Shown: in pieces, positions 1,873-6,522 of the stretch
How the letters are laid out: each line of letters opens with the position of its first letter
Numbering within the stretch: the stretch's first letter is position 1
Assembly: GCA_001938485.1 (NCBI GenBank)
Contig: MQRK01239584.1
Location: 1 to 64,000, forward strand
Origin: Girardia tigrina
Taxonomy: Eukaryota
DNA: 64,000 nt
Direction: 5' to 3'
Position numbers and translations under genes: made by a program
Notes under the pieces: generated by a model
The model's input: only the letters and a program-made list of their open reading frames with translations
The model's database searches: none
What the model was told of the DNA's origin: nothing

Positions 1873-4800
1873 ATATCCTTTTATGACTTCCTTTACTAAT
1901 TTACTGATTTTTAAAAGCTTAAAAATAAATAAATTGAATATTTATTGATACAATGGAGTTGAACTTCAAATTGGAAGAGCTCCTAAAGAACCCGAAGAAT
2001 TAATGAATCGGTTCCACCGAGTTATTATATTAATATTTGTCAAAGCGGGTTTTCGGGTAAAATATAATCTGTGTTTCGGAAACTCACTTAGAATTTAGAT
2101 TAATATAAGAAAACTGTATTTTAATGCAATAACAAAGAACAGAATGGGCTGAAAAAAGTTTGACGACATCACAATTACAACGTGAAAGGGATGGAGAGGT
2201 AGAACAACAAACTAAAAGAATTAAGTTACTTAAAATAGATTTTGTCTCAAAAGTACGAGATAACTAAATGCATTATTGAATGAGAGGATTGATTTTCACC
2301 GACTTGAGTGTTAGAACAAATAGCTGATAATTGAGATTTGTTTGTGATGTAGATAAAATTGGAATGTTTTCGGAATTTGATTTGTTATTTGAGGTAACGG
2401 TCCATTGGAAATAGTTTATTTAAAATTAAGAAGATTCATTGAGAGGTATAATATTGAAAAATAGTCATAATGTTTTTCTAGATTTAAAATCTTGAAAAAT
2501 TTACGATAGAAATCTAAATTTAACACGAATTGTCAAGACTATAAATCTTATATTAATATATTAATTTTTTATTGATTTTTTTACTAATTATTGTTAATAG
2601 TTATACATGTAATTTTAATACATATACATCTTTACTTGGTGTTGGACGCAGATATTCATATGGGTCTGCGTCTCGGAACAATGACCTAGGCATTACACAT
2701 AGTCTAGGTTGACTTTCGCGCTTTCCCTAATTGGGCAAGTCGAACACTTAATTTTTTTTAGTAATTTTTCTGTAATTGCATGAAACTAAATGTGAGGGGA
2801 AAGAATTGAAGTTTCAAACAGGGACAATACACGAATTGTAATAATGAATTCCATGGTCTGGCACCAATAGAGCATCATTTAAATATAATTTGCTGATAAA
2901 GACATTATAAAGAGATCTATACATCGCAGTGAGTTCATTTCAATTTCTATACAAAACAAGAAATCAAAGAAATGAGTCACTCTGGACCATATGCACCTTG
3001 ATCACCTGTTCAATAGTTTAGATTAATCCGACTAATTTCAAGCCCATTAGAAATCACAAGATGAATTTACTAGAGTAAAACGTTTAGTACAATTCCGACA
3101 TGAGGGACACTAAAAATAGTTTTTCATGAGCGTCGTCCGGTTTTTTTCTAACAGGCAGAAGAAGATAGGTAGCTCGCGAACAGAAGTGTCTGAAGAGAGA
3201 TATGAGTTTTATTGAGAAATGATAGCTACTTATGTTTTTTATGTTGTAGAAAGGACTTGTTCATGAAATAGCTTTCTTTAGCAGATTGAGAAACTATTGA
3301 AAGCCCCTCGTATATATGTTTTTTTAATTTTAATTGAGATTTTACTATATGATTCAAAAAAGTCATAACTAAAGTAAAGTAAGTATTGATTGTTGTTGTT
3401 GCAAATCTATTTAGAATCAATTTAAATGTTTTGTTCTGATTTTAAAGAAATATTTTAATCAACAGACAACAATTTATCAATATGCACGATTCTCGAATGT
3501 ATTTGAAATGTTTTTATACATTTAGTAAATATTTGTGCCGCCGAGAAAGTTGCTCAATGGTTTGAAGAAAATTGGATTGCTAGATTCGGACCACCTATAA
3601 AATTAATAACAGACTAAGGCCGACAGTTTGAATCAGACCTTTTTAAATCAATGTGTCAGAAATATAAAATATCAAAAAACACGAATATCAGCATATAATC
3701 CTCAATGTAACGGTAAAATAGAGAGATTCCACAAAGAACTAAAAGAAAAATTAAGAACTATGAGCAACAATGATAACTGGTTAAAACAATTACCACAAAC
3801 TCTTTTAGCACTCCGTTAAAAAATATGCAAAAGAACAGGAAATCCCCACTTTCAAATCTCACCGGAAAAGAAAGGAATCAATTAATAGAACAACCAAAGC
3901 GATTGACAAATAAATATATAAAAACAATACCGGAAAATACGGTAGCTTTCATTAAAAGAAGTACAGCAAGTAATTTTGAAAAACGTTATGAAGGACCTTT
4001 CGAAATCAAATTTCTAGCTAATAATTGTGCCCTGTTAAACATCAATGGAAAAGATACCTTTAAAAAAAGAAGTCTAAAAAGAAACGGAAAAAATAAGTTA
4101 AAGGATTATCTTTGAAAATTAAAAAACAAAAGAATATATAAATAAAAAATCAATAAACCAATAGATTAAGGTAATTAATTACCACGAATTATTAGAATTA
4201 ACTGGAATACTTTGGACGGTGGTCTTTTGTGATTTCATTTACCGAATTTAATTTCAAAGCTCTATTTCCTATCAATACAAGAAGAAAGAAGAAGAAAGAA
4301 GCTATGCGACGAAAGTATAACGAAATAACAACATTATCTTTATCCTTAACTGATTACTTACGGTTGTATCAAGTACCTATTAATATTTTGTAGTTATACT
4401 GTTTTTTTAATTATAACTATACTTAAATATTATATTTTTTTACTATTTAATTAATAAAATATACTAAAAGTAATTTCAACAGAATATTTTTTATTGTTGA
4501 AATTGCTTTTATAATAATTGGGAATAAAAAGGACTGAGAAAATCCGGGACCTGCAGTTGTCATGATGGAATATTGTAGTATAACGTTTGAAAGAAGGTGA
4601 CCATATTGTGAGGTATTATGAGGAATCTATCCGAAGATTCAGAATAAGGATTGTAAAGTTGAATTATTTTAATAATAGAAAATAAAAAATGGTGAAAGTT
4701 AATTAAAATTCATTTCAATAAAAAACAACAAGTAAATACATTTATATAATAATTAAAGTAAATGTTGGTCGTAATATCAGAATGTTTATTATTTCCATAC

Positions 4801-6522
4801 TACTCGAAGCATTTTACAGTATTTAGCTTTCTTGTCCTGACAACAATTATCATTAATTGCGTTTTTATGGCCCAAAATAGTAATAACGAAATAATTGAGT
4901 AAGAAACCTTTCTTACCAACAAAATTCACGTATTTACTTATTTGATTAGATACATTTTTACGGCAATATACACAATGGAATTCGCCATCAAAGCCTTGTC
5001 GAGGGGACTCATTGTTAATGAGTTTACCTATTTGAGGGATGCATGGAACTGGCTCGACTTTATCGTCATTGGATTAGCGTAAGACTTATTATTTTAAATA
5101 ATCAAACATTAAACTGAAGTTGAAATTTACTAAACTTTTAAAACTTTTTAGGTATCTGATGTTTTTCTTCCCGGTTTTGGGGAACTTGTCAGCATTGCGG
5201 TCACTTCGGGTATTGAGGGCATTGAAAACTGTAACCACAGTCCCAGGTAATTATGATTTTTAAATAAAAAAATAATCTGTCCGATATAATTGTAATATCA
5301 ATAAAATATTTTGATCAACAATTCTAATCTTATAAGTCAGAAAAAAGATAAAGAAGCAAAAGAAGAGTTAGTTATCGATGAAAAAGAAATAAATGGATTT
5401 TTAGATTTATGATGGGAGTAAATAATAATGCCAACATTATACTTGGTAAGTTGTGTTTTGACGTTAATTATAGGCTAAAGGAAGATAAGGAAAATCTTAT
5501 AAAGTATTATAGGGTTAAATAACTTCTCCTGAGAATTTCTTCAATTGAACGAGGTTGTATTGACATTGTGAAATAAATATCTTTGGTTTATGGTAATATC
5601 AAATTATCGTTTCAGGACTACATAACAGTAAATTGTAACAACTGTTGTCAATGGAGGACCCATTCACCAGATGAAATTGTGATGCATGTACATTCGAGTC
5701 CAAAATTAAAATAATCAGTACAGATTTCGGACAGTAAAGTATAAGGATCATTTGTTTTCGATGAGAACACAATTAATACTGCTATCTATAAAAATGTTTG
5801 AGAAATATGTAAATGAAATAAATATTTTAAATGTTTTCGGTATTCAAATCAACTTCAGCGTTAACTTTATTTAATTATCTGAATCCAAACAACAAAAGGT
5901 TCATCCAATACAAATGCATGACAAGTGAAACAAATTATTCAATAACAATTTATTATCAATAAATGATTCTAGCACAAAGCTTTTTATGATTTATTTAAGT
6001 TTTCAACAATCCATTAGAGAGCAGCTCAGCTTCGTTATGATCATTTATAAAACACCTCGTATCACAAAGCTTAATAGTATCCATTTATCATTATCAATTA
6101 TCACTACGGAGTACAAAGCTTTATAGAAATCAGCTATCAATAAATCGACATAGACCGAACACAGAGATTGCTCTACTAATCACTTATTTAGTCCGAGAGT
6201 TATCTGTGAAATAATTGTCATAAACTAGGTCGCTTTCTCTATTACAGGATACCTCACCGTGGTTTAATACTTTAATTGATTTTGGAATTTAACTAAAATT
6301 CAAAATTAAGTATTTTTTGCTGAAAGCATTTTGCATATGCTTGTTAAAAAATAGTTTAAAAATTTTTGAAGTTTTATTTTGTTGTTTAAATTTTAAAATA
6401 AAATGTTTTCTATATATCGAAGCCAAAGATATGTAAGAGACTTTTGAATAACCCTTTATGTATCACATTTTCCCTTTTTACTTATATTATATAATTGTGC
6501 TTTCTAAGTGCTTGTTTTAGCG

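Follow-up and report, generated by a model that had tools for sequence, protein, structure and literature searches.

A U1-like sequence in a U12-type intron of Girardia tigrina is very probably a pseudogene of a described planarian variant U1 family

Introduction

Human class II and class III pseudogenes of U1, U2 and U3 are 3'-truncated snRNA retropseudogenes. Variant U1 genes have been described as well: the human variant U1 snRNAs (vU1) are promoter-bearing and expressed in stem cells, as referenced in the planarian study considered here (refs 10 and 18 of PMC6312358), and that study provides an snRNA catalogue of Schmidtea mediterranea (Schmidt et al. 2018, PLoS Genet, PMC6312358, S1 Table). 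According to its supplement, U1A1 adjoins U1C1, and U1D1 lies 425 nt upstream of U1B1 (PMC6312358). The legend to S3C in the same supplement describes neoblast-enriched U1 variants of S. mediterranea, which carry a C-to-U change at the base facing donor position -1 (PMC6312358). The published sequences were compared with those of Girardia tigrina by eye from the supplement text (PMC6312358).

Here we describe a U1-like sequence located in a stretch of 64,000 nucleotides of the G. tigrina genome; the whole stretch that was analysed is called the window. The original prediction regarded this sequence as a re-programmed U1 snRNA gene with intact stems and altered single-stranded motifs, and offered three readings of it, namely as a U1 variant adapted to weak AT-rich donors, as a U1 that has diverged across the lineage, or as a pseudogene, with an undescribed system as its best candidate. 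Our results favour the last of the three: the element is very probably a common snRNA pseudogene, with its origin in a variant U1 family that is already known from planarians. A false lead is thereby removed, as the locus does not hold a re-programmed U1 system of an undescribed kind.

The U1-like sequence and its host intron

The host gene is predicted to be an ion-channel gene of the sodium-channel-like type, and the exons flanking its intron at 1873-4817 match Pfam Ion_trans. Both the U12-type intron and the sense orientation of the U1 copy relative to the ion-channel gene agree with what had been predicted. The features of the intron and of the U1 copy are as follows.

1873-4817, plus strand: host U12-type AT-AC intron, with ATATCCTT at 1873 and AC at 4816-4817
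2034-2615, 3538-4062 and 4062-4400: repeats in the host intron
2034-2615, plus strand: transposon-derived dispersed repeat fragment, with copies elsewhere (at least 9 further contigs, about 80% identity)
2628-2788, plus strand: U1 copy of the window, delimited by alignment to the Rfam U1 model (Girardia tigrina contig MQRK01239584.1)
2628-2631, plus strand: ATCT, start of the supposed new 5' arm; the E gene reads AAAC here, with a difference at each of positions 2-4
2632-2762, plus strand: body of U1 family E, U1 positions 5-135, about 92% identical to the E genes; contains the remaining arm with the inherited C-to-U change, helix H, SL1, SL2, SL3 and the Sm region
2654-2663, plus strand: SL1 loop, where the alignment with the E gene shows private changes of three G's, at positions 27, 28 and 33
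2691-2698, plus strand: SL2 loop CATTACAC, where 8/8 gene copies have CATTGCAC; change G68A at 2695
2750-2761, plus strand: Sm-site remnant A2-U8-AG, in which a G kept by every gene copy is lost (G130T)
2763-2779, plus strand: place of SL4, without a GC stem; at best a decayed, shortened remnant
2780-2791, plus strand: ATGAAACTAAAT, the same letters as in the 3'-box-like motif immediately 3' of the E genes

The U1-like sequence itself is real, and the arm (ATCTTTACTTGG), SL1 loop (ATTCATATGG), SL2 loop (ATTACAC) and Sm run (AATTTTTTTTAG) that had been quoted for it are all present. Compared with the Rfam U1 model, 2628-2788(+) aligns end to end with 60.5 bits and E 1.4e-14. The curated gathering score of the model is 69.5 bits, and since the window copy falls below it, a default Rfam scan of the whole window gives nothing at gathering level; the match surfaces solely under E-value thresholds. 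At the curated level the U1 model does not bear out the predicted gene.

A full-length U1 cloverleaf had been claimed, and its larger part is confirmed: the plus strand folds as helix H and SL1-SL3 with -44.9 kcal/mol (z = -3.8), and none of 200 shuffles (0/200) folds as well. There is, however, no real SL4. The region 2763-2788 forms merely a weak A/U hairpin with non-standard or mismatched pairs in the U1 model alignment, and no match to it was found in the U1 genes of the same genome. Similarly, the statement that every functional motif differs holds against textbook U1, but in comparison with the source family E, described below, there are merely 10 differences within U1 positions 5-135. 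Among these 10, the C at position 52 is the ancestral state, as in older copies and in S. mediterranea U1D1. The window arm reads ATCTTTACTTGG against AAACTTACTTGG in families E and C or ATACTTACCTGG in A and D; positions 2-4 differ, and this mismatch coincides with the usual break point of retro-copies. The copy retains TTACTTGGTGTT, that is, the arm U at position 9 together with GGUGUU of helix H. In the SL2 loop it has AUUACAC, whereas 8/8 genes have AUUGCAC, the U1A binding site. This loop (CATTACAC) and the missing Sm-site G are unique to the window U1 copy among the aligned sequences.

The rest of the intron is rich in repeats. Downstream of the U1 copy, positions 3538-4400 consist of two abutting high-copy repeats joined at about 4062, whose copies are about 90% identical (more than 1000 first-look candidates), and the first of the two bears an integrase-core remnant at 3628-3819. 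It was considered that the integrase fragment at 3628-4115 and the repeat at 2034-2615 might form a single element that captured U1; this was rejected, as the intron is a mosaic and the two hit no contigs in common.

U1 gene families of the genome

The U1 model search gave at least 42 matches genome-wide. By 5' arm and SL1 they include five intact families, which score 85-118 bits.

Family A: canonical arm, 117 bits
Family B: arm AAACTAACCTGG, 112 bits
Family C: arm AAACTTACTTGG, 109-112 bits
Family D: canonical arm, 103 bits
Family E: arm AAACTTACTTGG, 85 bits

The existence of canonical U1 copies would speak against the re-programmed system originally proposed, and canonical-arm genes were indeed found, at 103-118 bits. 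Compensatory double changes occur in 20/34 predicted base pairs (n=8 U1 gene copies), and because of this covariation the families can be regarded as real, structure-constrained genes. The compensatory stem changes for which a test had been suggested are present among the eight gene copies. None of the eight departs from CATTGCAC in the SL2 loop, nor do they vary in the Sm region. TATGYAA occurs in families A, B and C, exactly at -68/-69, and in a degenerate form in E, and an AATGAAA-type box follows a few bases past the 3' end in A, B and C, the corresponding box of E being AATGAAACTAAAT.

The extended, octamer-like form TATGYAA(A/G)T is seen exactly at -68/-69 in five independent A/B/C genes (loci L001, L003 and L059) and could be a candidate planarian snRNA promoter element. 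Two genes of family B (L003/L004; G000:C254007 and C254130, 1501-1652) score 112 bits and have both the promoter motif and the 3' box; in their arm AAACTAACCTGG an A replaces the U at the base facing donor position +3. This arm is also present in S. mediterranea U1A2/U1A3 according to the published table (PMC6312358).

A 2139-bp tandem unit contains E and D genes in alternation, together with 5S rRNA and U6; in this unit E lies 426 nt upstream of D. On one contig (L058; G000:C166897:1-3863) the unit can be followed as D (canonical-arm U1), E (variant-arm) and U6, with 5S rRNA on the opposite strand. Assembled reads cover the E sequence of the gene type, with G at 2695 and 2737, about thousand-fold deeper than the unique flank; this depth is consistent with a highly repeated array, probably one of very large size that the assembly has collapsed. 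Assembled reads also reproduce the sequence specific to the window copy from 2707 onward, which confirms it at the DNA level.

Families A and C adjoin on two other contigs. One A + C pair (L059; G000:C222891:1-3568) has G+C-rich flanks and the other (C129782) A/T-rich flanks, and the two pairs differ by compensatory changes. The L059 pair may lie in a genomic compartment of another kind, belong to a second haplotype or subgenome, or be foreign DNA. The same locus contains a third, weak U1 match at 2565-2728 (29 bits).

The flanks of the window copy differ from those of the genes. An upstream promoter had been among the things to look for, and none was seen: the transposon-derived fragment at 2034-2615 ends 12 nt 5' of the U1 copy and fills the place where a promoter is expected, TATGYAA at -68/-69, as in the A, B and C genes, is absent, and the upstream flank has no homology to that of the E genes (the score is lower than the shuffle mean). 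These observations bear directly on the idea of a working re-programmed U1 gene, the altered arm of which would recruit the spliceosome to weak AT-rich donors. Such a gene would account for the full-length match to the U1 model with its low E-value, for the core pairing of the source family, which is kept in full (37/37 base pairs), and for a possible 3'-box motif at 2780-2791. Nevertheless, it is barely conceivable, considering that the score is under the Rfam gathering score, that SL4 is missing, that the G of the SL2 loop and the G of the Sm site, both invariant in 8/8 gene copies, are gone, that transposon DNA occupies the promoter position, that no second copy has its loop variants, that the arm change at positions 2-4 falls on the usual break point of retro-copies, and that functional variant-arm genes occur elsewhere, in arrays. 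The changes in the window copy destroy motifs that are kept by every working U1 here, which argues against U1 function, and the copy would be silent as an snRNA. Most of the findings that had been named in advance as evidence against a re-programmed U1 were made, and they support reading the element as a pseudogene.

Dispersed copies of family E

A DNA search with the element revealed at least 40 E copies on unrelated contigs (66 first-look candidates), 86-93% identical to the window copy, and the E genes are at least as near to it as any of the copies listed. In most of the dispersed copies homology is lost somewhere in the first 1-8 nt and again just past the Sm site; the exceptions are one full-length copy (L035) and a few that extend into SL4. 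The first 4 nt in which the window copy departs from the E gene (2628-2631) are the same 4 nt in which homology is lost in nearly all sibling copies. The siblings score 63-69 bits, all of them under the gathering score of 69.5 bits. One sibling (L045) has a 16-bp target-site duplication (0/200 shuffles), which shows that retroposition has occurred in family E. Over 27 siblings, substitutions affect 3.1% of stem and 2.8% of loop positions when all sites are counted, and 4.2% and 5.1%, respectively, at G/C sites. The sibling copies undergo neutral decay, which is even over stems and loops. The U1D-type family E is the main source of U1 pseudogenes in this genome, which fits expression in heritable (stem or germ) cells.

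No target-site duplication of at least 8 nt was found bracketing the window U1 copy. Two short repeats were considered for this role and rejected: the upstream copy of the 11-nt direct repeat ACACGAATTGT (2523-2533 and 2829-2839) belongs to the dispersed repeat, and the 8-nt repeat TGTAATT(T/G) (2608-2615 and 2771-2778) is too short for A/T-rich DNA. A lost source gene that already carried the loop variants of the window copy was likewise rejected, as no other copy has two or more of them, bar 52C and 68A.

Some siblings have peculiarities of their own. At one locus (L046; G000:C238408:6324-9448, about 1497-2330) a 550-nt piece of 18S rRNA (1173-1648 of the model) lies between two inverted E copies, and one U1 head is fused directly to this piece on the same strand, so that the locus looks like a chimeric retro-copy that would have arisen via template switching. 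At another (L044; G000:C239741) the U1 arm is duplicated just upstream, AACTTACTTG being followed by AAACTTACTTGG, and at a third (L048; G000:C16989) the 3' flank has AAGTAAGTT, the complement of the arm. The features of the last two may hint at arm-mediated priming or pairing at insertion.

The window copy has the traits of a retropseudogene in that it is 92% identical over positions 5-135 and not at all upstream, and has dispersed relatives on different contigs. Its source is the variant U1 family E, the counterpart of S. mediterranea U1D, from which it was most likely copied via an RNA intermediate, inserted into a transposon-filled intron and then left to decay. The U that replaces C at position 9 of the arm (facing donor -1) is inherited from working E genes, and the remaining arm difference is confined to the first 4 nt, where E retro-copies routinely break off.

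The 3' end allows a further alternative. The 12-nt identity to the 3'-box region of E at 2780-2791 is marginal (p ~0.015-0.026) in A/T-rich sequence; it may possibly represent retained 3' flank of E. If this match is real, it implies either a copy made at the DNA level or a copy of an unprocessed, 3'-extended precursor. The former would make the element a DNA-level duplicate of an E gene, that is, a pseudogene with flanks, and the match does lie in roughly the right place. We consider this unlikely, as upstream homology is wholly absent, the match has a p of only about 0.02 in such A/T-rich surroundings, a 15-nt deletion between SL4 and the box is required, the siblings behave as retro-copies, and a read-through precursor RNA equally accounts for the box. 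A retro-copy of a truncated or 3'-extended transcript is the most likely route rather than DNA duplication. One trait of retropseudogenes fails in this copy: its substitutions do not ignore RNA structure.

Changes at unpaired guanines

In the window U1 copy, 8/19 G/C sites are changed in loops versus 1/44 in stems (Fisher p=1.4e-4, ~0.004 when corrected for 28 copies). Considering G's only, 7 of the 12 unpaired ones are changed versus 1 of the 25 paired ones (p=5e-4), and the sole changed paired G sat in a G-U wobble pair. G is lost on one (sense) strand in 8/10 differences, nearly all of them G to A or T. It had been claimed that intact stems with altered loops are not the pattern of neutral decay; this proved to be correct, and the anomaly consists in an excess of changes at unpaired G's. 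It is the only oddity of the window copy.

On the one hand, this contrast between loops and stems (p=1.4e-4), together with the fold z-score of -3.8, could be taken to indicate an exapted structured intronic RNA, with stems selected for a role other than that of U1, for example in folding of the U12 intron or as a decoy. On the other hand, when the window copy is compared with those siblings that keep C52, its stems are ordinary and not unusually intact (1 G/C hit versus 1-7), and it is the loops that are over-mutated (8 versus 0-3). An excess of loop hits is predicted by a mutational burst and not by purifying selection, and 8 of the 10 differences are G losses on one strand. Exaptation is therefore very improbable.

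The loop-only changes would be best explained by a burst of mutation at the unpaired G's of a folded single strand, not by selection. Candidates for this strand are the template RNA, the cDNA made on it and, in the transcribed intron, the non-template DNA: reverse transcription might misread G's that are unpaired in the RNA and have been damaged or modified, the folded cDNA might be edited, or the hairpin-forming non-template strand might be damaged during transcription of the host gene. An APOBEC-like context was not detected, as the base next to each mutated G is, in turn, G, T, T, A, C, A, T and T, with no GA/GG bias. That the copy is the footprint of a structure-dependent mutational process acting on a folded strand is a tentative and rather doubtful proposal, and the pattern may be chance. 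If the proposal is true, the pseudogene would be a natural 'mutational profile' of U1 folding; the pattern is a small curiosity about how retro-copies or transcribed hairpins mutate.

Another E copy (L038; G000:C187750) has as its sole three substitutions G to T changes at unpaired G's (27, 35 and 68), a small echo of the changes in the window copy.

Comparison with known systems

The U1 families of G. tigrina can be assigned to the genes in the published S. mediterranea table: U1A1 corresponds to family A, U1A2 to B and U1B1 to D (PMC6312358), and U1C1/2 corresponds to family C and U1D1 to E (PMC6312358). The sequences are near, yet not identical to, the published ones (PMC6312358). Linkage is alike, with 425 nt between U1D1 and U1B1 in S. 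mediterranea and 426 nt between E and D in G. tigrina (PMC6312358). Family E and U1D1 have the arm AAACTTACTTGG in common, are nearly identical in their 3' half (SL3 and Sm region) and possess an A/T-looped SL4 (PMC6312358), and both precede a canonical-arm U1 within a tandem unit (PMC6312358). As far as the published supplement allows the comparison, G. tigrina shares the U1 paralogue set of S. mediterranea, including canonical- and C-to-U-arm genes paired in tandem units, and this conservation across species supports the published idea of a functional variant arm (PMC6312358). The altered arm noticed in the original prediction, ACUUG for ACCUG, is a real inherited trait of a structure-conserved variant U1 lineage, as published (PMC6312358). 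Judged from these sequences, the variant arm is a known feature of a known planarian gene lineage (PMC6312358).

Unlike the U1C/U1D genes as given in that supplement, the window copy is decayed and has lost SL4, the promoter, the AUUGCAC loop and the Sm G (PMC6312358). The human vU1, as far as they are characterised in the same paper, parallel families B, C and E, being U1 paralogues in which the 5' arm and the protein-binding loops are changed; unlike them, the window copy lacks every feature of a gene.

The 3'-truncated snRNA retropseudogenes are a further known class. The window copy differs from them in that no duplication of 8 nt or more was found and in that it may keep a 3'-box-like motif, and it differs from its own siblings by its strand- and structure-biased mutation pattern. 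The likeness lies in the family as a whole: the E copies are dispersed, have no flanking homology and mostly break before the 3' stem-loop, and one of them carries a clear target-site duplication, as retropseudogenes do.
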